DNA of 64,000 bases, from positions 5,674,389-5,738,388 of the forward strand of contig CM121343.1 in the NCBI GenBank assembly GCA_051530055.1, written 5' to 3'. The translations under genes and the position numbers were made by a program. Source of the stretch: Neoechinorhynchus agilis. Taxonomy: Eukaryota > Animalia > Acanthocephala. The notes under the pieces were generated by a model, which saw only the letters and a program-made list of their open reading frames with translations, was not told the DNA's origin and did no database searches. Of this stretch, positions 3,718 to 62,046 are shown in pieces; the first letter of the stretch is position 1; each line of letters starts with the position of its first letter.

Positions 3718-5309
3718 GGACGTGCAACCAATGTCTCGAAAAGTGATGAAAATTTTCCTTTAATACATGAGTGAATCACGTAAAAAACACATCAAATTAA
3801 TATTACCATTGCAATGAGATTCCCGGTGCGACCTAAGCGAGTCACAAAATCACGACTTTTATGCTTTATCCTTACAATTTTCACGACCATTATTCGTGAT
3901 GATGGCATCAAAGGCATAAATGAAGCATCAAAAATAAAACTACTATTTCCAACAATCATTCTCAGTTCAGTACAACATCTTTAGAGCAAAACATTTTAGA
4001 AAAATCTTGGAAAATAATGCGAGATGGCTCATTTATTATAGAAACATTTCAATACCACAGGAAAACTTAGAACTGACACCTCTCATTTTTATCACCTACC
4101 CTTGAAAAAAATGAGCAAATGGATGCCAATTCAAAAATGGTTTAAATGTGTGAGATAAAAAATTATTTTAGTCACTAAAAATGACTTCATTCATTTTAAA
4201 TGAGAAAAATTGAGCTTCATTTGAATCCGAGAGTTAAAACTAATTATGTTTACGTTCAGATATAGTTTCGCAAATCCTCCAATATTTGGCTTAATTTATA
4301 TGCTCAGAAGGTTTGATTATTAACGAATCATCGAATTTATTTTTGCAGTTTATGTAGATTAAACAGAAACTCTTTAATTCGGCACTAATAACAAGTGGAC
4401 CTTGTTGGTGATCGTCTTACCGGAATGCATTACTGAACCTTATCTGTCCTTTCGACCGTTACACCGCTAATGAATGATCACAGATCAATTAACACAATCT
4501 CCAACATCCAGCAGAAATGTTGAAAACTTGCAGAATGATATTTAAACTTGAAAATTGGCGATTCTCTTTAGAAATTTAACATCAAAATATAGGACAAATT
4601 TTTGATACTTCAAAGCTGCAGAAAATCCTCAAACTTCACAGAGATGACTCATCTGATATCTTCAAATAGGAAAGCATCGATTTAATCGAAGTCAACGACA
4701 AGACGAGTAGGTCGCGATAATTTTAAATGCAGTAAAGCAGAATGATTTTGGTCGTTTTTCTGCTTCCAAAATTCATTCTAATTTCAAAAGCACTGAAAAA
4801 GTTCAGTGGTTGAGAAAGTTGCGATATCTACAATCTCATTGTAAGACTAAAAGTCGTACCAGAAAATCTAGTTTGTCCGAGACTGCAAGTCAGGAGTTGC
4901 GATTTGATTGCGACAATTGAGGACTTAGAAGAGTTCCTAAAAACATCTCATTTTATGCCTCACGGAATCTTCAGGAAACCTTTGTAAAAGTGGTTACCGA
5001 GTCTTTATGAACGAATTAAAATTTAGTAAAAAAGGCTGCATGTCAAAAGATTGTGGTGAAGGTCGTACTTAATGAGAATTAGGCGTATTTACTTTGTGGA
5101 CTATTAAGTGCATCAAATAATAGCAATTTATGGGAACTCTAATGTAATGGAGGAAAACGTCAATCGAGCGTATTTGATTTGGAAGTATACAGATGAATCA
5201 AGTTACACATGCACTCATGACAATGATTCATCTTTGCAGACCGGCATTGCCGGTTAAAACTTTGTTGGCAAAATACAACGCGCAATCGAATCAAACAAAA
5301 TAGTCCTCA

Positions 5310-8017
5310 TTAATGACCTTGAGTATGCTTCGAGGGTTGCGTGGATTTGCTAAATTGGGATGCTGAAGTCCTAACAAATGCTTCGAGATCGCCAAGGGCA
5401 ATACTTTGGTCCTCATTTGACTTAAAAGGATTTTTACCCGCAGCACCGTGGAGGCCAATCATTGGATCAGTTGCTTCCTGGCTCACAAATGGGTTATTTG
5501 ATTGTATGAAGGTCGGTTGTAGCGCGGAGGGCGACGGGTTTTTTTCCAATGTTGCGAATAAATCCTCCACTGTTGATTCAGAGTCCTTGTGTTCTTGAGT
5601 TTTCATCGTGGACGGGATTTCGAAGTCCAAATCCAGCAAGTCTTCATGATGACCGAGATCCGAGTCGTTCTTTACAATGCTTTGCATTTGAGGACTTTTC
5701 CGCTTCTCAACGAACCCAGGTGATTTATGCGACACACTACAGGAAATACTATTGTTACCTTTTGATGTTCTTGTTCAAAAAGAGATATAGCTTTTGCTTC
5801 GTCTTCGATCGCTTTAATTTGCTCATCAACATTAATACCAGTAATTGGTCTAGAAAAGGAAGACGATATTTAGTACAGTCTGTGGCTCCAACTTACTTTG
5901 TAACCAATTCACTTGGTACAACTCTCTGATGTTGACTTTCTCGGGGGCCGGATGTCCCTTCGAGAGAAGCACAGTAAGTCTCTAGTGTAGCTAGTAAGGA
6001 CTCCGGTGCTTTTTTGAGATCAGGGATTTCATTTCTTTGTGTTCCGAAATTTTCCGCTGTTTTGAGAAAGTTGGTAACACTATCACTTCGCAAAATAAAT
6101 CCTCGATACATTTCGAGAGCTTCTTTACATTGGGGTTTCCTGAGATCAAAGAAGCATTCTAAATCAAGCTTTTAAAGGTAAGACGCGGATTTTTTGATCA
6201 ATGCAGCGTCGGCGTAAAAAGCAGATTTACGGTCCCGACGCTAATCTATTAGATTTAAAATGATTTTCTTCCCTTTCAAAAGACGGGAGCAGTCGCCAGC
6301 CTCAGCGAGGAAAAGAAACGACATAAGTACTCTTCGCTTGATGGGCATCAATATATGTATTCATCCCGATTGCGGTGGAAATGCTGGGATGCCTCGGAAA
6401 AGAAGCCGATTATTTCTTTTCCCGACTGGGAAAGATGCTGAAATATGCCACCGGCGACATGCGCTCCAGCAGCTTCCTGATGCAGCGAATCAGCGCGGCA
6501 ATGCGCGGCCATCAACGAAGCTGCCGAACAATCATGACGACGGTTGCAGAATTGGATGAAAAGGAGGAATTCGTGAATGATTAAATTAACTGATTTAAAA
6601 AAATAAGAAAATTTATTGTTTATGATTTTATGTTACACAATTCTACCATACCAAAGTGAAACGATACCACGAAATGGCAAACATGAAGTGGAGCACGAAG
6701 CATTTCGCTGGATTTATCTGGCTATGAACAAAAAAATCCATCGCGACATTTAAACTGGAGTATTAAATTTTCACCATAATTTTTTTACTTTGGATTAATG
6801 GTGCAAATTTCTACGAAGAAAAAAATGGTCACGTTGTCCTGATGAATATTATTATATTTTTATTCGCTATCTTGTACCAGCAAAATGCATAATTTTTCAA
6901 CTAGAACGCATTAGTAATTGAATGCTAAAAAGATGAATTTACCACAAGTTATTAAGATTCAAAAATAAACAAATGCATAGTAGATCTTTCGTGAAATGCA
7001 CAAAAATTTAATTCGACTCATGGTAAGTTTTTATTGCAACAGAATGAATTGCAAAATCGCCGTAAAAAAAGTAGTGATATTTTGTAAAGGATTTTGATTT
7101 CCGCAAAAATAGATACCTACCCAATACAGTGGTCATGGCATCATTATAACAGGCATATAACCTGATTATATCCTTGAACATAAGGTAGCAAGCGGCGCAA
7201 ACGATAGAATTCATGATTTCTACGCTAGTTAACTAAGTAAGAAAAATAAGAAAGTCGAGATTATATAGGATCGCCGATTACCGTAAATCCAGTGATTGCA
7301 TCTATTTGGGTTTGAATAATCGGAGTTACTTTGGACAACTAAATGTATGAGTAAAAATCAGGTCCTTTTAAAATTTTACAAACCTTTTCGAATGGCATTC
7401 TTGCAAGGGTTCCTCCATCTTCTCGCCTATAATCGACAATTTTATAAAGATATTTCCTTCAAATACGCACCCTCGTTTGATACGGCAAAGATCGAAGCCA
7501 TTAATACGATAAGCTTCCCGTTTACCGTCCAGATAGGCTGCATATTTACGAATGTGGGTAGACATTTCGAATCCCGTAAGACTTGAGCGGTCCCAGAATT
7601 GCCCTAACTGGAACCGTTGACTGTAAGAAGCAATACAAGCTTCAAATCGTTCATTTCCGGAATTCATAAGATGATGTATAGTGATGAGGGCTTTAAAAGT
7701 AACGATCCAGCTCGAGGTTTTTAATCTTTCCAATAAAAGTTCGACCATCTGTGGCACGGACACATTTGATTGATTTGTGCAAAGCAGTACAAAATCGATT
7801 CTCGTGTATTCAGCATTCATACCATGAGAATCGATAGTTTTAAGTAGTTGACATGTTTCCGTTTAGGTGGAATAAGTTCCTCGGTAGTTGCCTTGCAGAC
7901 TGCTCGTCCGACTGCTGACCCCGTTAGTGTGTGTTTAGCGGCTTGCAAACGATCAGTAAGGCTCTGTCCCCCTCCACCGCCACCGGTAAGACCGCCGCCG
8001 CCGACGTTGTAGTTCAT
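5310..8017 (-). CDS. PICALM: PICALM/AP180 clathrin-assembly protein (ANTH domain), multi-exon
   Basis: [68 protein letters not shown]-terminal DLLDLDF and NPF motifs; GT-AG introns traced. Confidence 0.93.
6285..6584 (+). mobile_element. 3' fragment of a CRE-like (RLE) non-LTR retrotransposon inside a PICALM intron
   Basis: EEKKRHKY...IPIAVEMLG...[18 protein letters not shown] matches the RLE C-terminal FVPxAVETxG...FLxQRISxAIQRGNAA motif. Confidence 0.75.
7788..7842 (-). other. TA-bounded hairpin insert (53 nt + one TA) in the PICALM ANTH coding region
   Basis: Perfect 10-bp arms atcgattctc/gagaatcgat; contains a stop and frameshift; removal gives KHVNYLLLCTN (family KHLDYLIQCTN). Confidence 0.85.
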
Positions 8018-8999: not shown

Positions 9000-9165
9000 G
9001 AGATGTTATGTTTGTTCGGCAGCTTCCTTGATGGCCGCGGCATTGCCGCTTTGGATCGCCGCGCTGATTCGCTGCAACAGGAAGCTGCTGGATCGCATAT
9101 CGCCGGTGGCATGTTTTAGCATCCCTCCCAGTCGTGAGAGGAAATAATCGGCTTCTTTTCTCGAG
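9000..9165 (-). mobile_element. CRE-like RLE retrotransposon 3' fragment (same subfamily as 6285-6584)
   Basis: [51 protein letters not shown]. Confidence 0.75.
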
Positions 9166-9399: not shown

Positions 9400-12300
9400 A
9401 AAATAAGAGTCTTAGTTATTCTCAATGGCGAATTGTAACACACTCGAGCTTTATTGAACTGTTCATTGCGAATTTTCAAGGCCTCAGCCTCCTTCTCAAG
9501 CATCTAAAAATGGATGTGGTGGGGGTACCTAAGTTGGTAGATTTCTATAAAACTCGGGTGTGTTACAATTCGCCATTGGGAATATACATCCAATCGAAGG
9601 AACAATTGGATAGTCTTAGTTATGTTAACGATGAATCGTTGGTTGTCTTAGTCGTTAGGCCCTCTTGTCCACGCATTTGACTCTTTTAATAACGCTTCGG
9701 ATCCTTCCCAACTTATACCTAGGAAACGTTAGTAAAGGGATTTGCAGCCCAAGCAGCTTATTATTTTGTACCACTTTGGGTACATCTGTGAGATTGGATA
9801 AAAGAGTAGAGATCCTGATATGGTAGCCTTTTTCCGATTATTAGGAACTATAAAACAGTTTTGTAAATTGAGAGACAAATGAGCTTTACGCAAAAGCTTG
9901 TTGATCTCACTTAAACATTTCTTAATTGTTTCAGCGATATTTCTTAAAAATTTCTCTGATAAGAAAAGTGATATGTCATCCGCATAAATAAATAATTTGG
10001 ATCCACTTTTTAACTTAAAACACTTAAATAAAAAGCCTAGCTTTTAACAAATAAAATTGGGGAAAGAGGCGACCCTTGAAGGACTCCATATATAGGTTAA
10101 AAAATTCTCCTATCCTTATCGAGATCAAAGAAAACTCTTGGTTTCTAATAATATCATAATGTGATAAGTTTTTTGGCATTTTAAAAAAACGTAGGGCCTT
10201 AGAAATGAAGGCTTGATCAATTTCATCGAAGGCTCTGGATATATCTATTTGTAAAATCACGTTTGCAGAATTTAATTTGGCTCTAGTAAGCTCATAAGTT
10301 CCCCCATTAAGGAATGTACACCTCTGTCTGGAACAAAACCGTGCATAAAATCAGGAAACAATCATTTATCCTTCATATATTCCAATAGCTTTCATGTAAT
10401 TACGCGCTCAATTACTGAGATCAGTGGATCTTGAGGAGATATGGGTCGCACTCCACCAGTTGATAAATTCTTAAGTTAAAAAATATTTTTGAGATTAAAC
10501 TCGCTTTAATATCGTCATTTTTAATTTAAAAATAGCCGGTGGTGTCGAGAACTGATCTACCCATTGACCAGGCTTTAATAAAATCTCCAAAGCATGGAAA
10601 ATAATCGGTTTCTTTAATATTATCATTAAAATTGATTGGTCCCAAATATGGAGCAAGGCGTATCTCGCCCACATGGAAGTTTAAAATAGATTTGACAACT
10701 TCTGGATATGAGGCGATTCAAATCCATGAAGCCGCTTTTGATTTCCAATCCACAAATTTTTTGCTTAAAATAATATTCCACCACTTTTTGGAATGAGTAG
10801 CGCATTTTAAAAGTTTATCTCTCTCTTCATTTCATTCCAGTATAGCGAAGTAAAATATTTGTTTTTAAAAAAATCAGCTATTGAATGGTAACCGGTTTCT
10901 TTGGCCTCAACCTCCAATTTGAGAAGATAATTTAGATTAAAATCATGTCTCCAAAAACCGAAAACCTTAGTCTTTCTTAAAGACGACTCCGAGGCGAGAG
11001 AGCATAAGTTATGGACGTTGAGGAGGGCTGAATCTTGACTTAAAATTGCAGGTAATTTAGATAAAATATATTTTTTAGATAAAATAATATTGTTAAAAAA
11101 TAAAACCTTTCTATTATTAATAATGTAAGACTTTTGCGATACACCTCCGATGCTGGTGAAAACCATGGCATCATGTCCCAAGCGCCATTTCATTCTTATT
11201 TGCATTTCCAATGAGAATATAACATTAATTCGTTTGTTAAAGAATGTACCATCAATAAAAGAATGACACCCTGTGGACCGATTATATAACGATGGTTCCT
11301 CCGGTAAAATAATATAATAATCGGAAACGAATATGTTTCTAAAGGCATTCAAATAGTTATTGTTACTCAAGCTTGATTTCTGATTCCGATAAAAATTAGC
11401 CCATGTCAGACGCTATGGTCCTCCTTACTTTACTTTAAGTAGAAAAGGGTTCAAAGTGGACATAATTTGAATGGCAAATTCATAAGTGTGCTTTTCGAAA
11501 AGTATTTTAGGAGAAATTTCTTTTCTGAGGTAAGACTGTAAACCTCCAAAGAAGTTTGTTCGAGATGATAGAATGTACAGAGTTAAAAAACATTGAAAAT
11601 CAAATAAATTCAAAGAGGGTCTTAGTCACGTTTCTTGTAAAAAACATGCACAAAAGTCATTTTGCTTTCTTATTATAGAATCTTTTTCCTCAATATAAAG
11701 GATTTGCCTATGTTACAAGAGATAAAACGAAAGCTATCCATTTGCATGTGTTGTTTCTGAGGTCTAGAATACATCTGACTTAATTCTATACTGGTAATTG
11801 ATATGGCCCCCTTGAGCTTCCACAATTTTTGAAGCAACCTTCTCTTCTTTATTGGGTTTCTTATTCCCACTACTATTCCTAATTTCCTCCAAGGATTTTG
11901 ATTTTAAATCGTTTTCTTTCTTGAAGGCCTCTAATTTATTAGAAATAACATGCAATACCTTCAATTCCTCTTTTAAAGCGCAATTTTAATTTTTCAAGAT
12001 CCGACGCCACGTTTCTAATTGCATTTGGATTATTACCCAGGCGAGCAGGTTGGCTATAGGATAAAGGAGAAACCATAGACTTGCCGGGATTGGGAGTATT
12101 ATTGTTCATAAAGAAGTTTAGATATTTTTTGGCTTCGACGCACCTTGTGTCATAGGCTTTGTGGTCTAGACCACAATTAGCACATTTTCTGTGGAATTTA
12201 TTTGAACATCGACTGGAGAGATGAGCACCACTACAGTGCGTACAGATAACAGTGTGAACGCATTTGAACGCAGCGTACCCCATCGTTGGCATTTCCGACA

Positions 12301-19259: not shown

Positions 19260-19938
19260 AATATTTGTTCTGGTGATGAGGTGATTCCTACTCTCCGGAC
19301 AATAAAGATATCGATTCATTGCGATATTTCGCCGGGCAAATCCAACATTCTCAAACAATTTTGGATTAATGCTGGATTTGCCCAACGAAATATCGCAATG
19401 AATCAATATCTTTATTGTCCGGAGAGCAGGAATCACCTCAGCAACACTATAATACCTCCGAGGAACCTTTTACATCAGACTAATATTTGTTCTGTTGCTG
19501 AGGTGATTCCTACTCTCCGGACAATAAAGATATCGATTTATTGCGATATTTCGCCGGGCAAATCCAACATTCTCAAACAATTTTGGATTAATGCTGGATT
19601 TGCCCAACGAAATATCGCAATGAATCAATATCTTTATTGTCCGGAGAGCAGGAATCACCTCAGCAACACTATAATACCTCCGAGGAACCTTTTACATCAG
19701 ACTAATATTTGTTCTGTTGCTGAGGTGATTCCTACTCTCCGGACAATAAAGATATCGATTTATTGCGATATTTCACCGGGCAAATCCAACATTCTCAAAC
19801 AATTTTGGATTAATGCTTGAGAATGCTGGATTTACCCAGCGAAATATCGCAATGAATCAATATCTTTATTGTCCGGAGAGCAGGAATCACCTCAGCAACA
19901 CTATAATACCTCCATGGAACCTTTTACATCAGACTAAT
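19260..19938. repeat. Tandem array of three 222-bp units, each a ~176-bp foldback hairpin plus spacer
   Basis: gtgattcc at 19281, 19503, 19725; arms tgttgctgaggtgattcc...ggcaaatcca / tggatttgccc...ggaatcacctcagcaaca. Confidence 0.95.
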
Positions 19939-20540
19939 CTTGTTCTTTTGAACGTTTTTATATTTCCAGAAGATCTCAAACCGATATTTGCATGATCAAT
20001 GAGCAAAATTGGACGTGCAGCCAATCAGAGTCCGTGATATACTTTTGATCGAAGTTGAGATGGTAAGTTTATTCGTTCTTTTGAGCAGAAATTGCTAATG
20101 TTGGAGCGTTGTAATAGTTCGTTTCTCATTAAAAAAAGATTGGATTTTAAATTGTTTAAAAATGACTTTATTAAAGATTCCGTGGTTCACTGCAATTGTA
20201 TATGTTAGCGTGTTTTTTTCATAAATTAGGTGAAATAGTGTTTAAGGTTTTTTGATTTTAGAATACTCACTATTTCTCCAAAGTGCAACGCCTAATGCGT
20301 ATTTGCGGTTCTTTGTTTGGCGTTCATCCGCATATTTTTTGCCTTGTTCCCTATTGACAACTAGTGCCACGCTTGCAGAATATGAGACGAAGAGCGTGTG
20401 GGTTATGCAATGCACCACCACCACCACCACCGAGTGCTGCACAAGTTTATCTTATTCATCTTTCCGCATTTTTTGTGCCAACTTTAGGCAATTCGTTGAT
20501 TCATCTCAATCAAATCCACAATAAACTAAAATCAAACCGA

Positions 20541-26500: not shown

Positions 26501-27664
26501 TCAAATGAGCTCCTAGTTTTATTCTTGAATGAATTTCGAAAATTTAGATCGATTAAAGACGTTCTGCGAACTACGTAAGGGATTCATCCTCTCAGTTTGT
26601 TAGTTATTAGTAAGCGTCTATTAATAACTAACAAACTGAGATGATGAATCCCTTACGTAGTTCGCAGAACGTCTTTAATCGAAAAAAAATCATTTACAGA
26701 TTGAACACTTCTAAACAATAATCATATACTCCCCGGTACCTTCTCATATATCGACATTTTGACGTAAATTTCATGAGTTTTTATATAATTTTTTTAACGA
26801 TATACAAAATTATCGTGGCATTTGCAGATTGCAATCTAACAATTTTTTCTCACCGGAAGCAGCATCACACGAGCGTTAAAAGTTCGTACTTACAAAAACG
26901 AAAAGTTTGGATACGAATTAACATTCATCTCCGTTTTTAAGATGCTATTGAAGAAAACTGTAAAGCGGATTTTCTAAACGCTTTTTATGTAATCAAAGAG
27001 TAAAATGTAGCATGTGCCCAAACCCGTAAAATCGATGAAAAAGTATTTTGCTCTCAGCGCATTGATGGTCATCTACTGTCAAAAGAATGTTAAAGTTGAA
27101 CGGAAATCTTTCGATAATACCGAATCTACTATATTATTTATAGTATTTTTTCGATGAAATAAAAAACGTTATAGTTTCACGCTGCTAGATCCCTAGATGA
27201 TGTTAAACTTCTACCTTCAATGCCAATTTCTCTGCCTTAGATTTAGACTAAAATTACATTTGCATCCACGAGGTTCCTGTATGGATTTTTTTTCGACATA
27301 TTGTATTTATATGATTTTTCTGTGGGATCCATTTACCAATGCTTTTGCAAGTCTGAATAATATTCAACTTTTTAGTTACACAATTCAAGGACTGCCACGT
27401 ACGAACATGTACCTCATTCATTATGATGACTGCTGCTCTGAATGTCAAGCAGAAATGGCCTTGAAGATTGTCAAGAAACCCATAAAGTTAAACGAAACTG
27501 AAAAATGTATACGACTAAAGTCAACTCCATATCGAGAGCGGCCGCAAAAGTGTTACTTTGTTAACGATGAGGAGATATCAGCAGCATGCTCAGGAGCGTA
27601 CCTTGTTAAATTATCAATTGTAGTGATCGCAATTCAACTAATGTTATTGATGTCCGCGCAATAA
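20541..27664 (+). CDS. CACNA2D: Voltage-gated calcium channel alpha2delta subunit (CACNA2D3/4, straightjacket-like), many short introns
   Basis: Signal-peptide-like start, YYNAK, DPEITWQYF, FDCRVRTWY, VWA MIDAS DNSGS, TDG, FTYLIGRE, YHPDLRP, GKFFGEVNG, hydrophobic C-terminus; most exons traced with GT/GC-AG introns. Confidence 0.93.
26549..26682. repeat. 134-bp near-perfect palindrome (61-bp arms, 1 mismatch) in the last alpha2delta intron
   Basis: tcgattaaagacgttctgcgaac...gttagttatta / taataactaac...gttcgcagaacgtctttaatcga. Confidence 0.95.
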
Positions 27665-27757: not shown

Positions 27758-27836
27758 GGCTGACCATTTTTCCTTGGGTAAACAGCCCACCATGCACTTC
27801 CTTGAGGGCTGTATGCCCAAGGAAAAATGGTCAGCC
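27758..27836. repeat. 79-nt hairpin (31-bp arms) just downstream of the alpha2delta stop
   Basis: ggctgaccatttttccttgggtaaacagccc / gggctgtatgcccaaggaaaaatggtcagcc. Confidence 0.9.
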
Positions 27837-28442: not shown

Positions 28443-31400
28443 TTATTTCCCAACATAGCGCTTAAACAATCTCCTAGAAATGCGTTTTAAATGATCAATT
28501 GATTTTAATTGATTACCTAAACATTTTCTTCGATTTCACCAAATCCTCAAAATATTTAGATCGCTTTTTAGCCAATGATATGATCTAAAGATTGGGTAGA
28601 AGAATATTAGAAACATTTCTGACTAAAAAATTGATTTTTACCTCATCAGGAAGGCCTGCCAATTTCGCAACATTAAACCCGTGACTCTTGTTGCACGGGC
28701 CGCTGGTGTCCATTCGATATAGAAGGGTAATTGTGTTAGATTTCTCATTCATAGTAAAGCTCTAAATTACACTTCCAATTACGGCACCCGAAATTAACAC
28801 AACAAACCATATGAGCCAATGTAACATCTCTCTTCTCAAACTCAGCTACGATTGAGTGATAATGAGTCGAAAAAATGACTCGGCATTTTAATCGAACGCA
28901 GCGATCGAGTACAGCTGAAGCAATTGCAGTTCCATCGAACGTAGATGTTCCACGGCCAAGTTCATCAATCAAAACAAGAGACTGGTGCGTAGCAACTTCC
29001 ACGATGGGCTTAATTTCAGCCATTTCGGCAAAAAAAGTACTGATTCCTAATGTCGAGTCGCCGATGCCAGCACCGATTCTGGTAAATATACGGTCACAAG
29101 CACTAAGTACCATTTTCGAGCAGGGCACATGGATTCCGACGTGAGCCATCCACACCGAAATTCCCACTTGTCTAAGTAATGTGCTTTTACCGCCCATATT
29201 CGGTCCGGTTAAGACTATTGTACTGGGCGAATCACCTATGCCACCCATCTTTATATCATTCGGAATCAGATTAGAAGGAGAGGAATATAAAAGGATAGGA
29301 TGTCGTGAATCAAGCATTTCAAGATAAGAGCATCCATTGTTCACAAATTCAGCCCGGCTCACAGAATCGGAAAACAAAGAAGAGCAGTATTGCAACCATT
29401 TTGCCAATGAACACAGTACATCTAACACGGAAACAAAGTCCAGTGCCTTGATCCAGTCGCAGTAATCCTTATCGAAGGTACTAAGCATCCAACGAAATGA
29501 TGAACCACGGGCTAAATCGAGCTTTATCTCCGCTTCAACCAACTCATCTAATTGCTTATTTATCCAATCAGTTTTGTATCGACTAACATTTTTCTTTGTG
29601 GATGTTAAGATGAAGCAAGCGGGCAGTTTGTGGCCTGTGGAATCATTTCGTATTTCCATTTGATATCGATTACGACCTGTTCCCACATATTTAATGGACA
29701 ACTGTGTTAAAAGTGATGATTAAAAATGTTTATGGTTGACTAACTTTGGCTTTGGCCTCTTGATCTGCACGATAAGCCTCTAATTTCTGTTGTATCTCAA
29801 TGACACGATTATTGGCCTCGTTGAACTCAGGGCTTGATTCCGTAGACTCGAACGTGGAGCTTTCAAACCTACTTAGTTTCTCACGAATGTTTTCAAATTT
29901 GAAAGATGGGAGAAGTCGCCTCAGCATGATTGGACAATCTTCCAACAGTTCAAACTCCTCAATAATGTCAATCATTACCAAAATCGCATTTGCACTTTTC
30001 ATCAATAACGAATGCTTTCTACGCGTATAAGTATCCTCTTCAAACAGTACAGCACGATTCTCGGGATGAGTTACTGGTTTTGCACTCAATGAGTGAATCC
30101 TAAAAGGAAAGGTGAATGTAATAATGTCGATATTTGCGAGGAGGTACCGGGGAATGTGATTGGAATCATTATGGTTAGAAGTCTACACCCGCGGTAAATG
30201 GTTATTTCGATTAAAAACGTTCTGCGAACCTCGTCGGGTTCATCATCATCAGTTTGTTGGTAGTATACGCTATCGATGTTTAGTAGATGAAATTAATCCA
30301 ACACAAAATTGCATCGATTTGTGGTGTATTCCCTAAGCAGCTTTCTTGTTTAAACAATAGGCAATTAAAAACCAGTAATCCTAACAAGTGTCCGTATATG
30401 ACCATAAAATCTTGCAAACTAAGCATGCAATACTAAAAATCGATTGGCTTAGAAAAGTATCGAAATCTAGAAGGAACGCGCTTTGGATTTTCAATTAATA
30501 AATTGTTGAGGATACGAAATTACAATTACTCACTTTTCTTCACCACTCTTAATTTTTCGACCTCCGTTACTCGTTCAATGATCCACTGTTAAATCGTGGT
30601 TTGCAATTCTACAAAAAAATATTTAAACTTTGGATCAAAACCCATTCTGGTTTACGTTTCTAGAACTTGGTTTAGCTGAAAAACCGCAAAAATTTGTTTG
30701 CAGTGATGCGTTTTAGATAACTGAACAGTTTTAAGCTGAGTAGACAAGAAAACCTAAAAATGACCACCAGTTCTTTAGACAATTTAATATTAATATGGAG
30801 ATCAAAATATATGTATGATGCAAAAGGTCGGGTGAAAGATGTGAAGGACAATAGAAAACTGTAAACAACTTAACGTTGAAATTTGCAATAAAACTAGTGC
30901 ACAATACTGGCGTTCGATTATTTCGGACGTAAGCTTAAAAGTCACTTTGTATTACGGTGATTTGATCCAATACTCGAAGAAGAACAGATACTTCTCAAGA
31001 ATGGTTGGCGGATTGCCTCATAAAGTAAGCTAAAGTTTTAGCAGATATCTTGGATTAAACAGAACTTTAAATGATATTTCTCTAGGAATTATTCGCAGAT
31101 AAAAGAATGAATAGGAATGACTGAGTCAATACAGATTTATTGCTTTCATGAAATCAGCTAGAAAAGTGATTAAAAATTAGAGCATAAATATTACTTTAAG
31201 TGTTTATGTGAACATCCCTTACGCGGCTGATTTTTTGGGCACACAGCCCACCGAAGCGATTTGTACAAACTCATAACCGTGTATTTCAGAGTTTAAGTGA
31301 CTCCATGGGCTTTCATAATCCAAATCGGAGGACTGTGTGCTCAAGAAATCAGTAGTGCAAGCGATGTTCACTTAAGTACTTAAAAAATGACCGGTAGCCA

Positions 31401-33432
31401 AACATGAGGAAAAATAAATACTACTTCTAAAAAATGCTTTGAGCATTCAAAACCTAATTTGGCAAATAAAGAATCGTAAATTATGATGTGTTAATTGAAA
31501 CCAAATACTAACTTCATGAGCATTCTTTGCGTATCGGAAGGCAATTGCTTTATCTTGTTTACAATATCTTCACAACGTCCATTGGAAATCCACTCTATGG
31601 CATCAACTCGTTCGTTTATGCCAGTTATGTTCTTTAATGGATTTAGGAGCCAATCTCTGAGCATTCGACGTCCACTATTGGTCACGCACTTATCCAAGCA
31701 ACTGAACAACGAATCGGTTTCTTCACCGCTGTTTCCAATATGACCAATAATTCCAAGACTGAGAGCGGAGCTGGAATCCACGACCATTCTATCGCAATCT
31801 TCATCGACAATGACAAATTCCCGTCTGCTAAGAAGCTCTTGGTCGATGAGGCAAAATCTTAAATATCCAATCAATAAACCTATTGATGTCATTGTCCTTG
31901 AAAAGGGCGGGTTCTTGAGCTTTTCTAAAATATCCCGCTCTACATGGGGTTTTAAATATTCAACAAGTTCAAGACTGCTCCACGTGTTGTACTTACAAAA
32001 CGAATGAATTTCGCGAAAAAAGAAGCAACAAATGCGAATTCATTCGTTTGTTATTTAATGATGCATTTTCAATAAGGCATTTTCCATACATGTTCAGTGT
32101 GTTCCACAGCTCAGTTGAAACTTTCAATCGATCACATAAAATCTGTGAAGCCGGGTGATTAATCAAACACGTTCGGACAGTTCCGTAAAAACGGTCAGGG
32201 CAGCATAGTCTTACGAAAAATCGCCCTTGGGACACATCCACAAAGACTAGGCAAACGCTCATATCCAATAATTCCGTCACAGCGTACATGTACCCATTCA
32301 GTGGTCCAGAGATGATATCTTCATTCAAAGATTCGAGATCGTAGGTGAATGTGCCTGGAGTGGTGATTTCACATATTTCTCGGTTCACAACTTGGGAAGA
32401 TTTACGGCGATCAGTTTTCGTGCGCTCAGACATTGCTTTCTATCGCGACTTCTGATTTTACCCGGATTTACACGATAAAAAAAGAAGCCACGATCTAGTT
32501 GACTCAGTTTGTTCAACTCTTGCGATTTTATAACCCTGTTTCACCAAATGATTGGCAGCTTTGGCAAAAGCAATCTCGGGAAAGCCGCAATGAGCAAATC
32601 TGCCTTTCATAAACGTCATGCTCAACTCTTTGGCCACAATCATAGCATCCATGTGATAAAATTCGTAAAATTTGCCTACCTAAACATAGAGCAGAGGAAA
32701 AAATTTAAGAAATGCAAGGGGAAAATATCGATTATTGCTTAAATCTGATGTTTTTGGAATCGATCAAGCACACAACAATGCGAAATTAGACTAGAATTTT
32801 AAGCACGACTATTAATGAATTATTTACGAAGCATAAATGGACGGAACGATTGTTGTACCTTAAAGCATAAAAGAGTATCGAAATTGGCACTTTTCAACGT
32901 CCACCATTGCTGCATGGCCTAAAATTCATAGACAGATTTATGATTATAAGAATCTCTTACGGGAGATTGTTGCGATAGAAAGGAAGATGGAACATAAAGG
33001 GTGGATGGATCATAGTCTGGATGAGTTGATAATCGCTTCTTGGAATCTTTAATGTTCTTTGGGAGTATAAAATCGAGCTTGGTGTGAATGAAATCTCGAA
33101 AGTTGTCATCCTCTATAATCTGCGAATCTTCATTGGAGTTCAATTGGCTGTCTGTGAGTTGAGTGGAAAATGATTGGCATTCAAAAGAAGTGTCTATCTT
33201 TCCTATATAAGAAGATTAAATTCTTTAAATATACTATTATCTCACCGCACGAATCTAAAGTCTGAATTTCATAGTTCCTCGATGATCGAAGTATTTTATT
33301 ATGGCCAGGCGAGCTGTTTTCACAATCACTAAATGATTGAGACTGCATAGCGGGCATCTCTATCGCAGAGGTTTCACTATCCGTTCGAGAGAAATAATCC
33401 CTTATTGTCCGACTCTTCCTTGCTCGTTTCAT
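28443..33432 (-). CDS. MSH6: DNA mismatch repair protein MSH6, multi-exon, with two hairpin inserts in coding sequence
   Basis: PIP-like [93 protein letters not shown]. Confidence 0.95.
31994..32053 (-). other. TA-bounded hairpin insert (58 nt + one TA) in MSH6
   Basis: 13-bp perfect core aaacgaatgaatt/aattcattcgttt; removal restores frame as ENASLNKYNTWSS. Confidence 0.85.
32441..32497 (-). other. TA-bounded hairpin insert in MSH6 (frame needs a 54- or 57-nt removal, not the 55-nt TA-TA removal)
   Basis: 12-bp stem atcgtggcttct/agaagtcgcgat (2 G-U pairs); two in-frame stops between VEQTEST and KAMSER. Confidence 0.65.
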
Positions 33433-33876: not shown

Positions 33877-34249
33877 TAATGAATAATTTCTTTACCTTAA
33901 AATTGCTGTCCACTTGGTCGCTGACGGTCTTTTAAAAATGAAGATTCTCAACAGTTAAAAATCGAAGTTTCAACTCCTTTGGATTTGGTTGACAAAAAAT
34001 CCCGTGTTATTTTCATACTATTAAATCCGATATTTCGGAGGCAAAATCGCGTGCCTTAGATACTATAGCAAAAACAACCTTAACGAAGGCACAATAATGT
34101 GACGAAATATCCGATTTAATAAATTCCTTCAAGCATTGTAATATTTGGCAATACTCTAACAAATGTTCGTTCACTTTTTGACGCATAAATTAAGACGTTT
34201 GAAGGTTGAACTATCCGTGTTTTTATATGGCCGAAAAGTAAAATAATTT

Positions 34250-35524
34250 ATTGTACGTTGGCGAATTCTGTCCCCGGTGTTATCGATACTCATTTATTTG
34301 AGAAATATTTCACAAGGTTTTCCTTGCCTCTTCAGTCGCTATTGCTTGTAATTTTTTAATGTGTGAGTTTGTGTCCTGGCGAATCCTGTCCCCGGTGTTA
34401 TCGATACTCATTTATTTGAGAAATATTTCACAAGGTTTTTCCTTGCTTCTTCAGTCTCTATTGCTTGTAAGTTTTAAATGTGTGAGTTGGTGTCTTGGCG
34501 AATCCTGTCCCCGGTGTTATCGATACTCATTTATTTGCGAAATATTTCACAAGGTTTTCCTTGCCTCTTCAGTCGCTATTGCTTGTAAGTTTTTAATGTG
34601 TGAGTTGGTGTCTTGACGAATTCTGTCCCCGGTGTTGTCGATACTCATTTATTAATTGCGAAATATTTCACAAGGTTTTCCTTGCCTCTTCAGTCGCTAT
34701 TGCTTTTAAGTTTTAAATGTGTGAGTTGGTGTCTTGGCGAATCTGTCCCGGTGTTGTCGATACTCATTTATAATTGCGAAATATTTCACAAGGTTTTCCT
34801 TGCCTCTTCAGTCGCTATTGCTTCTAAGTTTTAAATGTGTGAGGTGGTGTCTTGGTGAATCCTGTCTCCGGTGTTATCGATACCCATTTATAATTGCGAA
34901 ATATTTCACAAGGTTTTCCTTGCCTCTTTGGTCGCTATTGCTTCTAAGTTTTAAATGTGTGAGTTGGTGTCTTGGTGAATCCTGTCTCCGGTGTTATCGA
35001 TACCCATTTATAATTGCGAAATATTTCACAAGGTTTTCCTTGCCTCTTTGGTCGCTATTGCTTCTAAGTTTTAAATGTGTGAGTTGGTGCTTTGGCGAAT
35101 CCTGTCTCCGATGTTATCGATACTCATTTATTTCTTTGAGAAATATTTCACAAGGTTTTCCTTGCCTCTTCAGTCGCTATTGCTTGTAAGTTTTAAATGT
35201 GTGAGTTGGTATCTTTGCTAATTCTGTCCTCGGTGTTGTCGATACTCATTTATTTGCGAAATATTTCACAAGGTTTTCCTTGCCTCTTCAGTCGCTATTG
35301 TTTCGCAAGTTTTTCGACTGAAGAGGCAAGGAAAACCTTGTGAAATATTTCGCAATTAATAAATGAGTATCGACAACACCGGGGACCGAATTCGCCAAGA
35401 CACCACCTCACACATTTAAAACTTACAAGCAATAGCGACTGAAGAGGCAAGGAAAACCTTGTGAAATATTTCTCAAATAAATGAGTATCGATAACACCGG
35501 GGACAGGATTCGCCAATGTACAAT
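34250..35524. mobile_element. Foldback-like element: ~9 forward 118-121-bp tandem units, an inversion at ~35300, ~1.7 reverse units, unique inverted termini
   Basis: Unit ggcgaattctgtccccggtgttatcgatac...gtgtctt; ends attgtacgttggcgaa / ttcgccaatgtacaat. Confidence 0.85.
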
Positions 35525-38034: not shown

Positions 38035-38308
38035 ACTTAAGACATTCCACACGAGCGAAAAAGGAACAAAAAGTCTTAGAGCGAAATTACGCACATCCCC
38101 AATCAAACGATCCGCAACGACTACCACGGCTAGATCCGCCGCCGTTATCGTTATTTTCTGATAGAGAGGCAGACGCGCACCACGATGCCTACTTTTGCCG
38201 TAAACACAGGATCTCAAAAACGCGGAACTTGGTTTCTTCCGCGTTCTGAGCGCATTTGAAACTCTAAATGTATTTATACTGCTACGTATATTTTTCCTTT
38301 TAGGGCAA

Positions 38309-38902
38309 ATGCGCCTGTTTGCCCTTCTCATTTTGTATAAAGACGCTTCTGAGGCTCGCCTTCTCAAAGATGCACATGACCTGTCGACATTTGGGTTTTT
38401 CCAGAGATCTGGAGTAAAAGAATTTATAATCTTTACTGCCCGGACGCTAATCGATCGTTCACAACTTGATTCAAGGTCAACGGTTCAACAAGGTGAATAC
38501 ACCATGCACGCTTATGTCCGGAAGGATCGATTATCGGCAGTAGCCGTATCGTGCAATAAATACCCTCGTCGGGTAGCCCACAGCCTTCTAGTTCGTCTTT
38601 TGATGGATTTCGAAATCGCGTGTCCTAGTTCTCAGTGGCATACTGGTGATCCTTCGCGGATTTTATTTGAACGAATCACTCAATTGCTTAATGAGTACCA
38701 AGAACCGTCTCAGGCGGATAATATTTTAAAAATACAAGCGGATTTGGATGAGACAAAGATTGTCTTACACACTACAATGGAATCATTACTTCAACGTGGA
38801 GAAACCCTGGATGATCTCGTTCAGAGAAGCAGTCTACTCAGCCTAGAATCGAAGGCGTTCTACACCGTAGCGAAAAAATCCAATCGATGTTGTTCCCTAT
38901 AA
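38309..38902 (+). CDS. YKT6: Longin R-SNARE YKT6, single exon
   Basis: DLSTFGFFQRSGVKEF, YPRRVAH, DLDETKIVLH, LLQRGETLDDLV, C-terminal CCSL prenylation box. Confidence 0.95.
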   Translation: MRLFALLILYKDASEARLLKDAHDLSTFGFFQRSGVKEFIIFTARTLIDRSQLDSRSTVQQGEYTMHAYVRKDRLSAVAVSCNKYPRRVAHSLLVRLLMDFEIACPSSQWHTGDPSRILFERITQLLNEYQEPSQADNILKIQADLDETKIVLHTTMESLLQRGETLDDLVQRSSLLSLESKAFYTVAKKSNRCCSL

Positions 38903-39751: not shown

Positions 39752-42684
39752 ATGATGCCTGACGACACAGCCGGAGACAATCTCGATTCGGTCGCAGTGG
39801 TACACGGGGGCAATAATCAGAGGCACTGCTCCTCGAACGCTGCCGTTCATCACCAATTCCCCAATTTTGATCCATCAAGAATGTGCTACCCGCCTGCACC
39901 TCCACCGAATGACGGCATCCAAAATGGAAACAATGAAATCGCAGCCATTGACATAAAGGCGTCATCGCTGACCGTTGGTCAACTAGCAGCCTCAAACGCT
40001 CCACTCTGCTTCTACGCACCGCAACAGCAGCAGCAGCAGCAGCAGCAGCCTGTACCGCAGTGCCCCTCGTCATGTAACCGATTTATCGCAGCCCAGCAAC
40101 CGCCGCCCCAACAAAAGAATCTGACCATTTCGCTGAACAACGCCCGGTCGCGCGGACCCATTGGGGGCGGCGGCGCCGGTGCATTGCCTTCAACGTCTCT
40201 TGATACACTCGATGTACTCGCTCAACTTGATAACCATCCGGATCGACAAGTATTCGTTGATAATCTAAGACTCATATGGAGCGAACATAATATCAAATTC
40301 CGTTCACTTCCGACAATATCCAAAAAGTCTATTGATCTATATCTTTTATACCTTTTGGTCAAGGATCGAAACGGATTTCTTGAGGTTACACGCAAAAAAC
40401 AGTGGAAGGAAGTGGCAAATGCTCTCGGCATTACAAATTGCGGAAGCGCGGCCTTTGGGGTTAAACGAAACTACAGCAAGTCGGGTCTATTTTTCTATGA
40501 ATGCAGATTCGAATTGAACAATGCTGATCCTAAGGTAGTGATTGCTGATTATGAAAAACAACATGGAACCAATCACTCATTCGCATCTGCCGTTGAAGGT
40601 TCCAGCAGCTACCATACTCAACAACAGCAACAGAGGAACTCGCCTTGTACGGCCGGCACGGGTTGTCCTTCTCGAAAGAGAAAACGGACGTCCATTCCTG
40701 AAGGAGGATTCAAATCTAGTCCTGAATCTGGGAGTGCTCAAACACCCCAACAGTCGCAAACTGTAAGGCAACCGAACGTTAACCACAACAGCAACAGTAT
40801 GATGCCTAAGCAGCCACCGTTTGTTCCTTGCAGCAGCGCACCGTCTGCCCCAATGGGAACAAGCATGGGGAACTACTATCCCGTCAATACTCCGTCTTCT
40901 CGGATGATGCAGCTTGACTGTGGCACTGTCTGTCAACCATTGACTGTGCCACCAGTTCCATCATCGAACAATTACTATTTGGGCGCGATGCAAAATCACT
41001 GAGTGATTCCTTCTGATATGTATATTTTGCATCGACCACATACATGCATCCTCAACAGCAACAGGGGTGGGTACCACCATCTCAGTTTCGACCGAATGAT
41101 ATTCGATTTGGCACAGTCCATTCAGTCGATGATCCAACCAGGCAATATCCCGTCTCAAATCATGCTGGACTGGTTATGACAGCCCCTCAGCTTGTACAAC
41201 CACGAATGTTTTATCCACATGCAACCCTTCCTGCACACCACCACCATCAAACGAATGCTTATCCAACGTTACAAACAATGCAGCCACCGCCTTCGCAGTT
41301 GGAAGAGCACTCATCGGATAATCCAGTCTCTGGTCCAACCGGACCTGTTACTCAATCTCCACCGCCCAAAGTTGTCAGCCTTTCCGCAACGGAAAAGCGT
41401 ACTTCAATCATAGCTCCAATGGCGATCGCCCGCATTCAACCAGGTACCCACTTGGGACATGAACCGATTAACTTGAGCAGAGTATACATGTCTTTGAAGT
41501 GTGGATTAAGATCTGAGATTAAGTGGTCTTTAGAAGCACTAGCGTCTTTGCTGGTCATAGATGGGAATCCATCGCCGATTCAGTACATGGACTTGAAAAA
41601 TTTGCCGAGATTGCTGGAGTTAATTATAGATCTTACTCATAAATCCATCGATCGTATAGTATGCACCAGTTCGTCAAATATTGAGGAGACACCGTTCGAT
41701 CGAGACTTCGCGGAGTCATGTATAGTAACTTTGTCTTTAATCATAAGGAACCTATCTTTTCTACCGCAAAATTTCTCAATTCTAGCATCTTGTTCCGGTT
41801 TGGTACAAGCTCTTGATTGGATGTTAGGCGTACAATTTCCCGTTGTTATATCAAAGAGCTCTCGTGACATCGTGACAGAAAGCGCCCTGGTAACATTGGC
41901 TAACATCGGAGGATGTCTTCGACTTGATCCGTCGAGCATAAATCGGTCATTGATCAGGCGGTTGGTCGTGTGGTCCTCTGATGCAAGAGTACTCGAAGCA
42001 GCGAAAGATTCTGATCCTTGTACGAATCTAACCGGACAGAGGCTTGCGATCGAATGCATGGCGAAAATGAGCGTTTATGAAAATAACATGAGACTTCTAT
42101 CTCAAGTTATTTCGGACAAATTATTAGAGTCACTGCTGCTAACCCTGAACGAGTGGCTTGATGAACCAGTTGGAGTTTTGTTCAGTGACAAACATACGCT
42201 TAATGAATTGAGCGTCAACATGATCAATGGAATTCTGAGTGCAGAAGACTCTCCGAGGATAAAAAACATCCTATCATTGGTTGCTTTATCAACACTTAAA
42301 AACAGACTACTCAAACATTTCGTGTTCGAGCTCAGTAGACTTGTTGGGAAAAGCCGTGTCGATGAAAATGACTTTGCTTGTGCACTCAAGTGCTCCAAGT
42401 GCCTTGTCCAGTCCTTGAGACTTGCAAATCGGCAGGAAAAAAGGCGATGGAGAAGACGGGCCATGTTTGAAAGATTGCTCCTCAATACTGTCTCCAAGTA
42501 TCCAACAATGCCGCCAAAGCTCAGCGTATCTTTACATGAATGCCTCAGTCTAGTCGCTCAACCCGCCAACACAACCCGACCCACATCATTCACCTCGTCT
42601 TTATCATTTGAAAGCGACGGTGGAGGCGACAGAGGAGGCGGTGGCGCCGTCGTGAGCTGCAACAGTAGGCAACGGGCGACGTAA
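39752..42684 (+). CDS. ARID1: ARID1/Osa/BAF250 SWI/SNF subunit; two ORFs joined by removal of a TA-bounded hairpin
   Basis: ARID domain (IDLYLLYLLVK..QWKEVANALG..SAAFGVKRNY..FYECRF); BAF250_C (RVYMSLKCGL..W.LE.L; LSLIIRNLSF; LAIECMAKMSV.ENN). Confidence 0.88.
40976..41042 (+). other. TA-bounded hairpin insert (65 nt + one TA) in ARID1
   Basis: 11-bp perfect arms cgatgcaaaat/attttgcatcg with further pairing out to both TAs; removal fuses the ORFs as NNYYMHPQQ. Confidence 0.8.
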
Positions 42685-46227: not shown

Positions 46228-47420
46228 TATAATAACACGTTTTATTACTGCGCAAAGAAGAGGACCAATGCAATTTGGGGTCCTCATAAACACTCGAGTT
46301 CTGATTGGATAAATTGACCTGGCTATTGATTTTGGAGTTGATTACGAGTCCGGACGGGTGAGGATATCCGGTCGGGTTAGAAGGTAGGTCCGTTATGATG
46401 GGAATTGGTCGTTATTGTTTGCAGGAGTGAGCGTAAGGTTGGCTTTTCCTCAGGTTAATTTCGAGTAATGATATCCTAGAAGATTGGACAGTAAAGAAAA
46501 AGGAGCGTATTTAGAAGATGCAAGGTGAAGAAGGATAAAGAGAAATTGGGATTGCGAGTGTTGTGCTTGTGTGAAAAGGGGGCGATATGTGGTAGAAATT
46601 GTGATGGTAAGGTTGGGAGACGATTTGATTGTTTATTGAAAATCTTATGAAGATATTCGGTGAGAAACATTTCAAGGCGAAGGATTTGAGATATGGAAAA
46701 GTTGCAAAAGACGGGATAACCGTAGGTGAGGAAAGGTATAAAATAAAGCAGAAGTAAAATTTAGATAGATCGGGTGAAAGGATTCCTAAATGGTTGTTTT
46801 ATGGCGAATAAATTGAAATGATCTTATTTTAAATCCAAAATCTCGACACAAAGGTTGTTAGCAGAGGAAAATTTGCCCAAGTATCGGATTTAAAATAAAA
46901 TCATTTCAATTTATTCGCCATAAAACAACCAATATGATTCCTAAATGTCGGAGGCGTTTGAGAAGATAAATTTTGAAGGTGTTGTGCTTAAGGGAGAAAG
47001 TGATGTGCGAGTCCCATTTTAAGAGGATATCCGTTACCGAAAATTTGGGTTCCAAGCCGAGTGGTAGGAGCCATAAATTGTTGTTGAGAAGTGAAAGAAG
47101 GCGTTATTTAAAACATTTTTCGATGATTTTTGAAAGAGCGGGTAGAATGGATATTGTATTGAATGATTCGGCGGAAATAAGACGTCCTTTTTTGGAACAA
47201 GGATAACTTTAGCAGTTTTCAGGCCGGAGTATCGGCTAGTTGACAAAAGTTTCAGATGTGGGTTTTAAAGATTTTGTGTAGACTGATGTGGAGCAATGAT
47301 TGTAATTTGAGTCAGCGCAGAGTTTTTGATTGATGGAATCTAAAACCTGTTTTAATTCAGTGGAGGTCAAATTAGGGAAGGGATCCGGGTGGCGTAGACC
47401 AATAGCATCTTTGACGGATC
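46228..47420 (-). mobile_element. Second truncated copy of the L2/CR1-like LINE (3' end plus RT fragments), internally deleted, carrying a nested MITE
   Basis: Colinear with 42870-43450; KTAKVILVPKK; same 3' tail. Confidence 0.75.
46792..46935. mobile_element. ~144-bp MITE with ~45-bp TIRs and an 11-12-bp target-site duplication
   Basis: TIR ggttgttttatggcgaataaattgaaatgat...; gattcctaaat(g) duplicated at 46781 and 46936; host LINE is colinear across the site. Confidence 0.85.
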
Positions 47421-49924: not shown

Positions 49925-50232
49925 CACCACCGTCCGCAAAATTGGAGCTTCTCTCCTTCCTCGGCTGTCGCTATCACGCTGGCAGCATTGCCTCGTTGTA
50001 CTGTATGGGAGATATTTTGTCCTGCTCGTTCGTCGCCGGTCGTTTCTCTCAATTTCTTCGAGAGATCCTGGAGCAGAGTGCCGAGCTGCCAAGCGCTACG
50101 AAAATATAAGAATTTAGCAAGGACCCACTATTTTGTCCCCTTCGGAGACGTATGGAGCGCTTGGCAGCTCGGCACTCACTCTGCTCCAGGATCCCTCAAA
50201 GAAATTAAGAGAAACGGCCGGCGACGCACGAG
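49925..50232 (-). mobile_element. CRE-like RLE 3' fragments (second subfamily, two overlapping partial pieces)
   Basis: HYFVP..ETYGALGSSAL; VQRGNAAS; colinear with 53606-53850. Confidence 0.7.
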
Positions 50233-50522: not shown

Positions 50523-50632
50523 AATTTGTTGTCTTCAAATGTTATGTTTGTTCGGCAGCTTCCTTGATGGCCGCGGCATTGCCGCGTTGGATCGCCGCGC
50601 TGATTCGCTGCAACAGGAAGCTGCTGGATCGC
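50523..50632 (-). mobile_element. CRE-like RLE 3' fragment, near-identical to 48386-48482
   Basis: SSSFLLQRISAAIQRGNAAAIKEAAEQT*. Confidence 0.75.
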
Positions 50633-61834: not shown

Positions 61835-62046
61835 TTGCCGATTCGCACTAGTTTGACAGCTCTCAAAACTACAGCTCATATGTTCCTCTTCCACGAGACG
61901 GCAGGAAGAATTTCCACAATCTGCTTGGAAACGTCGGGCAATCGCTTTCTGTCCTGTTTTCTTTTTCCTACCACTCCACTGAACGGTTTTGATCGTTCAA
62001 ATCTGGAAGGGCGGGTCCGCGAAATTTAGGTGACCCATCATCCGTT

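Follow-up and report, generated by a model that had tools for sequence, protein, structure and literature searches.

How can a gene keep its coding sequence in good order when its first exon is broken by a stop codon and a frameshift? The question is raised by the PICALM/AP180 (CALM) ortholog of the acanthocephalan Neoechinorhynchus agilis, which lies in a 64,000-nucleotide (nt) stretch of contig CM121343.1 (GenBank assembly GCA_051530055.1, positions 5,674,389 to 5,738,388), hereafter called the window, in whose numbering all positions are given. The product of the Mo25 gene in the window matches a GenBank protein of N. agilis at 100% identity. The window represents 64 kb of a 46-Mb genome, which has been published as a 46.2-Mb assembly made from pooled worms and annotated with BRAKER (PMC12690905). 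Between codons 59 and 60 of this gene lie 53 nt that form a hairpin, and the parts of the locus that bear on the question are these, from the start codon onwards.

5310-8017, minus strand: PICALM/AP180 (CALM) ortholog, start to stop codon, seven exons and six GT-AG introns.
7841-8017, minus strand: first stretch of exon 1 (part a), with codons 1-59; the KRKH phosphoinositide-binding motif is encoded here.
7788-7840, minus strand: the 53-nt insert between codons 59 and 60 of exon 1, in the register AA...TA.
7826-7835, minus strand: 5′ arm of the insert, ATCGATTCTC.
7804-7825, minus strand: 22-nt loop of the insert, which holds an in-frame TGA at 7817-7819.
7794-7803, minus strand: 3′ arm of the insert, GAGAATCGAT.
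7471-7787, minus strand: second stretch of exon 1 (part b), with codons 60-165; the intron after it is GT-AG and 44 nt long.

An exon model was assembled by hand with the insert taken out, and it yields an open reading frame (ORF) of 484 amino acids (aa) that corresponds to the gene minus exactly 53 nt. The six introns of the model measure 44, 45, 49, 962, 47 and 53/56 nt and are GT-AG without exception; none of the seven exons holds a second lesion, and the C-terminus has a DLL motif and two NPF motifs. In the restored ANTH domain, residues 16-304 align with residues 9-295 of mammalian CALM (E 1.8e-93), and the alignment runs without a gap across the junction. Exon 1 by itself, minus the 53 nt, matches Pfam ANTH with an E-value of 7e-29 and mammalian CALM with 4e-51, again gapless at the junction. 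The joined sequence is CAACTACTTACTGCTTTGC, with the join point at ...AACTACTTA/CTGCTTTGC..., and the residues that span it pair without a gap with CALM KKKHLDYLIQCTNEMNV. Upstream of the insert, codons 1-59 alone match CALM residues 9-52 (E 5e-14) and are about 70% identical to the mammalian sequence. The CALM-like character of these codons, together with the gapless ANTH domain obtained by removing 53 nt, indicates that both halves of the gene are still under coding constraint. An earlier reading made from the letters of the window (the sequence-only reading) had proposed that deletion of 53 nt restores the ANTH domain, had given the expected join and had considered the rest of the gene intact, and the alignments and the exon model bear out all three proposals.

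The public annotation takes a different N-terminus. Downstream of the insert our model is identical, residue for residue, to GenBank KAL7669181.1 (ACOME3_009847, 435 aa; 5310-7820, minus strand). The start codon of that product, ATG at 7818-7820, is located in the loop of the insert, which puts the gene's annotated boundary at 7820. The insert encodes the first 11 residues of this product, and the true N-terminal 59 residues, including the KRKH motif, are missing. The ATG overlaps the stop codon of the insert (TGA, 7817-7819) as ATGA. In a collection of 15 billion proteins the restored protein of 483/484 aa was not found, and the truncated GenBank model is the sole record of the gene there. 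As an observation apart from the insert, one copy of a repeat of about 70 nt (GGCAGCTTCCTTGATGGCCGCGG...) lies within intron 4 of PICALM, at about 6450-6530; other copies are at 9019-9088 and 50555-50624.

The structure of the insert was described in the sequence-only reading as a perfect 10-bp stem with a stop and a frameshift, and this description is accurate. On the coding strand, positions 7788-7842 read cTTA/AAACT ATCGATTCTC atggtatgaatgctgaatacac GAGAATCGAT TTTGTA/CTG, where the slashes mark the borders of the insert. The arms are complementary at 10 of 10 positions, and over a 13-nt extension the complementarity is 92%. The predicted RNA fold has a free energy of -14.8 kcal/mol (z = -3.56), a stability reached by 0 of 200 shuffled sequences, and a perfect 10-bp stem occurred in 5 of 5000 shuffles of the 53-mer; by both measures the hairpin is non-random. 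Reading through the insert gives KLSILMV and then the TGA, and because 53 is 2 mod 3, the insert also imposes a +2 frameshift.

Junction registers here, and for the other inserts described below, were deduced from protein homology. The PICALM alignment requires a junction that lies beyond the arms by 4-7 nt and does not have the GT-AG form. Since TA is repeated at the two borders, the registers 7788-7840, 7789-7841 and 7790-7842 (TA..TG, AA..GT and AA..TA) yield one and the same product. The ends of the insert are TAAAACTA and, as reverse complement, TACAAAAT; their outermost 5-6 nt pair imperfectly (TAAAACT versus TACAAAA), and the 2-nt repeat is not significant in itself. On its sequence the insert resembles an internally deleted DNA-transposon remnant or a miniature inverted-repeat transposable element (MITE). 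Separately, a hairpin of the same build is found at 5191-5233 on the minus strand, with perfect 10-bp arms (AGATGAATCA/TGATTCATCT) and a loop of 23 nt. It lies about 80 nt 3′ of PICALM's stop codon and probably belongs to the 3′ untranslated region (UTR).

The simplest route of removal would be an ordinary intron. We listed every GT-AG, GC-AG and AT-AC combination that leaves the frame open and takes its donor from the insert or from the sequence upstream of it, and none of these pairs rescues the frame without the loss of at least five conserved residues. The nearest GT-AG solution uses the GTATGA donor (GTATGAAT...CCACAG), for which the first frame-restoring AG is 74 nt away; splicing there would remove 13 conserved residues and put the insert-encoded KLSILM in their place; the 13 conserved residues at stake with this donor had been pointed out in the sequence-only reading. 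The nearest AT-AC pair costs the residues HVNYL and has no U12 consensus. A canonical U2 or U12 intron was therefore rejected, because no enumerated pair keeps the conserved residues and the 53-nt borders are TA..TG, AA..GT or AA..TA. There was likewise no sign of a known structured RNA: no Rfam family, ribozymes included, reached its gathering score anywhere in the window, and inspection of the fold by eye revealed no IRE1-type or bulge-helix-bulge motif, the flanks being unpaired or extending the helix. No obvious polypyrimidine tract with an AG and no branch-site motif were seen, also by eye.

The insert does not stand alone. A search for hairpins whose removal joins long ORFs, together with an inspection of genes that are split in GenBank, produced four further cases in the window, of which three are robust and one is ambiguous.

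60381-60428, minus strand: WDFY-like gene, 48-nt insert within the FYVE finger, arms CATCGATTCTC/GAGAAGCGATG, 18-nt loop.
40976-41040, plus strand: 65-nt insert in ARID1/Osa, perfect 11-bp arms CGATGCAAAAT/ATTTTGCATCG, TA on both sides.
32441-32497, minus strand: insert in MSH6 domain I, a 53-nt hairpin between VEQTES and AMSER, with two in-frame stops.
31994-32051, minus strand: possible second insert in MSH6, 58 nt, perfect 13-bp arms, TA/TAA repeat.

The WDFY insert separates CGKAL from CDSC and has ATGT at both borders. It is in frame and nevertheless carries a TAG; its length of 48 nt is fixed by the spacing of the zinc ligands (CGxxxCxxC), and its removal raises the FYVE score from 42 to 52 bits. 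Removal of the ARID1 insert unites ORFs of about 421 and 500 codons, and an 11-bp stem occurred in 2 of 5000 shuffles of this insert. The MSH6 domain I insert has a stem of 12 bp in which two mismatches at the DNA level become G.U pairs, and this only in the sense RNA; it folds with -23.2 kcal/mol (z = -4.32), and the length removed is necessarily 54, 57 or 60 nt. With both inserts taken out, residues 1-351 of MSH6 align continuously to residues 91-486 of the human protein (E 3.6e-48). The second MSH6 insert is ambiguous because the BRAKER/GenBank model treats it as coding and splices from the GTAAGT donor after it.

In the public annotation ARID1 (39752-42684, plus strand) is represented by two genes that abut the insert, an ARID gene of 416 aa and a BAF250_C gene of 546 aa, and MSH6 (28745-33432, minus strand) by three, of 236, 286 and 271 aa. 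The break in ARID1 and the first break in MSH6, the one in domain I, coincide with hairpin inserts. A PIX-like GEF (55892-59301, minus strand) is also annotated as two genes, an SH3 gene of 78 aa and a RhoGEF gene of 589 aa. The apparent breaks in Mo25, in a PLP-decarboxylase, in the SH3 region of PIX and at the III/V junction of MSH6 proved to be ordinary GT-AG introns, which shows that the inserts are a specific phenomenon and not a general failure of annotation.

Several properties are common to the inserts. They measure 48-65 nt, close to the short canonical introns of this region (43-56 nt); a stem of 10-13 bp begins a few nt inside the borders; every one introduces a stop or a frameshift; canonical splice sites are absent; and each lies in conserved coding sequence of a gene that has no other lesion. 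In PICALM, ARID1 and WDFY, one of the equivalent registers pairs the first with the last excised base, giving a closed hairpin whose base is at the junctions. These terminal pairs are present in the predicted folds of ARID1 and WDFY, whereas for PICALM the pairing (U1.G53, with AAAA/UUUU across a CU bulge) was read by hand and the predicted fold leaves the flanks unpaired.

Other properties are not shared. The end dinucleotides differ (TA..TG, AT..AT and TG..CA), and the TA borders fail in two of the five inserts: the TA-TA (TAG-TAG) register of MSH6 domain I is 55 nt and out of frame, and WDFY has no TA at its 3′ side. The label of a TA element, which the sequence-only reading attached to the PICALM insert, is thus correct in that TA flanks this insert on both sides, but it is weakened as a description of the class, because 2-nt repeats are abundant at every insert and carry no statistical weight and because WDFY and MSH6 domain I deviate. 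For the same reasons we discarded a universal TA or direct-repeat rule. A fixed offset between stem and junction was discarded as well, since no single value suits all the inserts.

The arm sequence ATCGATTCTC/GAGAATCGAT is present in both the PICALM and the WDFY inserts, with one mismatch in the latter, and has no other exact occurrence in the window as a 10-mer. The loops and spacers of the two inserts are unrelated. Shared arms around unrelated filler suggest that the two inserts are related and evidently old, and the pattern points to diverged relatives, not to a fresh burst. A single MITE family was considered and rejected, since BLAST of all five inserts against the window returned no further copies and only the PICALM and WDFY arms coincide. 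Judged from their sequences, the inserts would instead make up a class of 48-65-nt hairpin elements resident in the coding exons of this genome, of which the PICALM insert appears to be one. No Pomphorhynchus laevis PICALM or MSH6 was returned for a comparison of orthologous sites, the Mo25 locus of P. laevis was uninformative, and the supplement of the genome paper (PMC12690905) contains nothing on insert-bearing genes.

About four of the roughly 14 genes in the window hold such an insert as their sole defect, with conserved sequence on both flanks, which suggests that the inserts are neutralised and not lethal. Because MSH6, ARID1 and WDFY are robust cases, in which a hairpin insert of comparable length is the sole interruption and its removal restores the gene, the argument that the PICALM insert is removed becomes stronger. 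We propose that the 53 nt are a miniature inverted-repeat insertion, with paired arms, a loop of unrelated sequence and TA at either border, in exon 1 of a PICALM gene that would be functional. In the pre-mRNA the two arms would pair, and the foot of the helix so formed would hold the two exon ends side by side; the closed hairpin would then be excised and the ends rejoined by a reaction that is guided by structure and independent of sequence. Candidates for this reaction are SOS-type splicing and a very permissive spliceosome. To the proposal as a whole, that the inserts are cut from the transcript at the RNA level by a hairpin-guided, non-GU-AG excision, we assign an even chance.

SOS splicing, which acts on exonic DNA transposons in C. 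elegans and in human cells (Zhao et al., Nature 2025, PMC12779559), is in our comparison the best-fitting known process. It is triggered by the pairing of repeats irrespective of their sequence, its junctions are at or near the repeat ends and rarely GU-AG, and it rescues gene function when the product is in frame; it depends on AKAP17A, CAAP1 and RTCB, and it processes insertions in exons and 3′ UTRs, whereas two intronic insertions that were tested were not processed (PMC12779559). The PICALM insert would fit this scheme, to judge by its sequence, in having pairable inverted repeats in a coding exon and required junctions that are near the repeat ends and not GU-AG. A further likeness is that 3′ UTR copies are SOS substrates and that a similar hairpin is found just 3′ of the PICALM stop codon.

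The differences are also clear. SOS substrates are new or experimental insertions of Tc1, Tc3, Tc4 and Hsmar2, whole or deleted, and their splicing is imprecise, whereas the N. agilis elements are about 50 nt long, seem to have been present for a long time in conserved domains that are essential, and would have to be removed with a precise join. Several facts count against an excision of the SOS type, or against excision altogether. The arms are 10-13 bp, compared with much longer triggering inverted terminal repeats (54 nt in Tc1), and PMC12779559 states no minimum length. The ANTH helix and the FYVE finger need an exact join. There is no common terminal dinucleotide and no fixed distance from stem to junction across the inserts, and two of the five folds are no better than shuffled sequences (z = -0.89 for ARID1 and -1.06 for WDFY). 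Finally, the restored PICALM protein is missing from the public protein collection, and the genome was obtained from pooled worms, so that an insertion polymorphism is possible. A weak hint in the opposite direction comes from the BUSCO scores, in which the transcriptome (metazoa 54.9%, eukaryota 71.0%) surpasses the genome (47.1% and 58.4%, respectively; PMC12690905); this is the direction expected for repair at the RNA level, which limits of the gene finder could explain equally.

Among the rivals to hairpin-guided excision, the one that survives best, although we consider it unlikely, is a MITE-derived intron spliced by a permissive U2 spliceosome, in which the hairpin merely juxtaposes the ends. 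There is a metazoan precedent: MITE-derived introns with ends other than GT/AG that are spliced by the major spliceosome are on record (PMC11282704, PMC13326754). In Fritillaria borealis, non-canonical introns derived from MITEs make up about 95% of introns, with AG/AC and AG/AT ends (Henriet et al. 2019; Soo et al. 2026, PMC13326754), and the U2 machinery is modified, with a duplicated U2AF (PMC13326754). N. agilis is similar in having short inverted-repeat elements that lack GT-AG in the genes of a compact metazoan genome, and the size of the inserts suits the short canonical introns mentioned above. It differs in that canonical GT-AG introns dominate, six of the seven intervening sequences of PICALM among them, and the inserts have no common end motif, nor an evident polypyrimidine tract with AG or branch site. 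We could also discard a Fritillaria-like organization of the genome as a whole, since the introns checked in Mo25, PLP-decarboxylase, PIX, MSH6 and WDFY are GT-AG as well and the insert ends are not AG/AC.

A second rival supposes that the insert is retained, either as a recent or polymorphic inactivating insertion or with production of an N-truncated protein from the ATG in the loop, the ATGA overlap possibly allowing reinitiation. Such an in-frame ATG does exist and serves the GenBank model, the DNA came from a pool of worms, and 40-45% of metazoan BUSCO genes are missing in N. agilis, which the authors read as gene loss (PMC12690905). The truncated product, however, would be deprived of helices 1-2 and of the KRKH lipid-binding motif, and the 59 upstream codons are kept at about 70% identity to mammals in a gene whose seven exons are free of a second lesion. 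The same single type of lesion in MSH6, ARID1 and WDFY also argues against retention, as does the lack, within the 64 kb, of near-identical copies that would indicate a recent burst. On this balance retention is improbable.

A third rival places the removal in the DNA: the assembly would represent germline-type DNA, and the inserts would be precisely excised in somatic nuclei in the manner of the TA-bounded internal eliminated sequences (IESs) of ciliates. The Paramecium IESs are indeed tens of nt long, lie in coding exons, carry stops or frameshifts and have TA at both borders, of which one is kept. The inserts are likewise small, exonic and stop-bearing, and an excision that leaves one TA is exactly in frame for PICALM (53 nt), ARID1 (65 nt) and the second MSH6 insert (58 nt). 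Because adult acanthocephalans hold many germ cells, most of the DNA extracted from whole worms could be of germline origin; on this point the species paper says no more than that the ovarian balls proliferate and the testes are enlarged (PMC12690905). On the other side stand the two inserts, MSH6 domain I and WDFY, that break the TA rule, and the arms, which differ from insert to insert and make a single arm-recognising excisase hard to picture. Paramecium IESs are cut from DNA by a domesticated piggyBac transposase, have the weak end consensus TAYAGYNR, which the N. agilis ends miss, and contain no internal stem of 10-13 bp. Our search of the literature yielded no account of programmed DNA elimination for either Acanthocephala or Rotifera. 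DNA-level removal is in our judgement a poor prospect, ranking below retention.

An artefact of assembly or polishing is highly improbable. The hybrid MaSuRCA/Oxford Nanopore (ONT) assembly does mix short and long reads from pooled animals, but the loop of every insert is unique and not a copy of flanking sequence, and five cases follow one consistent architecture. The known artefacts of long reads are indels of 1-2 nt or fold-backs at the kilobase scale, not novel palindromes of 50 nt. Translational bypass, for which phage T4 gene 60 and the byp elements of yeast mitochondria are the models and in which the ribosomes would skip the 53 nt, can be dismissed as the least probable of all, since a gap of about 50 nt with a hairpin and a stop is offset by unmatched take-off and landing codons (UUA vs GUA), by a stop that is eight codons past the junction instead of adjacent to it, and by the fact that PICALM is a nuclear metazoan gene.

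Two further systems invite comparison. The nonconventional introns of euglenids have no conserved border dinucleotides, unite their splice sites by the pairing of their ends and show short direct repeats at the junctions, all of which recall the N. agilis inserts; they belong to a protist lineage, however, and their pairing is fixed at +4..+6 and -8..-6 with a CAG/CTG motif that is not present here. Stowaway-like (Tc1/mariner-type) MITEs have inverted-repeat ends, TA flanks and no coding capacity, to which the inserts may correspond, and the shared arms and unrelated internal filler of the PICALM and WDFY inserts would be in keeping with such elements. In contrast to a MITE family, the outermost 4-7 nt vary between copies, the 64 kb contain no multi-copy family, and no autonomous partner was identified. 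From these comparisons, the inserts would seem to work most like an SOS substrate or a non-conventional intron of the Fritillaria or euglenid kind, and to look most like a miniature, TA-flanked MITE remnant. Our literature search returned no report of exon-resident hairpin elements or MITEs, of non-canonical introns or of DNA elimination in Acanthocephala.

If the inserts are excised from RNA, essential genes of N. agilis would routinely depend on hairpin-guided, non-GU-AG splicing, and the worm would be a natural system where the choice of cut sites and the source of their precision are open to direct study. Hairpin-guided splicing was first described in 2025, as an emergency response to transposons (PMC12779559). 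If they are excised from DNA, this would be the first ciliate-like system of short IESs in an animal, and by either route a second class of intervening sequence, defined by structure, would exist in a metazoan. A bolder extension, which we offer tentatively and think somewhat doubtful, is that N. agilis, and perhaps acanthocephalans generally, carry hundreds to thousands of hairpins of about 50 nt, fixed in coding exons of core genes, that are removed precisely and constitutively by a spliceosome-independent cut-and-ligate pathway of the SOS type, or are excised from somatic DNA; expression of these genes would depend on the removal.

The inserts will be surprising if their excision is confirmed; the consequence for the public N. 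agilis annotation is already concrete. In that annotation PICALM is truncated and MSH6 and ARID1 are split at the inserts, and for this reason part of the reported gene loss, as well as drug-target lists based on the proteome, may be affected. Exon inserts that gene finders cannot bridge may likewise contribute to the low BUSCO scores.

The rest of the window holds further repeats and palindromes, which we note as observations in their own right. There are 53 perfect hairpins with a stem of 9 bp or longer, compared with 14-42 in 20 shuffles. MITE-like palindromes with arms of 17-40 bp are present at 9436-9565, 26549-26682, 27758-27836, 34019-34121, 46791-46931 and 50076-50177; several are flanked by TA, and they lie outside ORFs that match protein families. 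One arm of the element at 26549 is found again at about 30205-30228, within an intron of MSH6. There are five tandem arrays, at 19260-19950, 34258-35313, 54845-55815, 62043-62579 and 362-981, with periods of 222, 118, 119, 184 and 312 nt, respectively. In the 222-nt array, every unit has a pair of nested palindromes. The 118-nt satellite unit holds TATCGATACTCAT, a 12/13 match to the arm region of PICALM, and its array terminates in a palindrome with 41-bp arms (35254-35355).

Among the genes, an intact single-exon YKT6-like longin SNARE (MRLFALLILYK...CCSL) at about 38300-38902 on the plus strand is missing from the called genes; at its 5′ end it overlaps MRPL12, a gene of the opposite strand. 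Degenerate reverse-transcriptase fragments occur at 9732-10350 on the minus strand, within an unannotated stretch from 8.8 to 13.7 kb. The GC skew makes strong local swings, with values of -0.23 (14-16 kb), +0.24 (42-44 kb) and -0.31 (44-46 kb).

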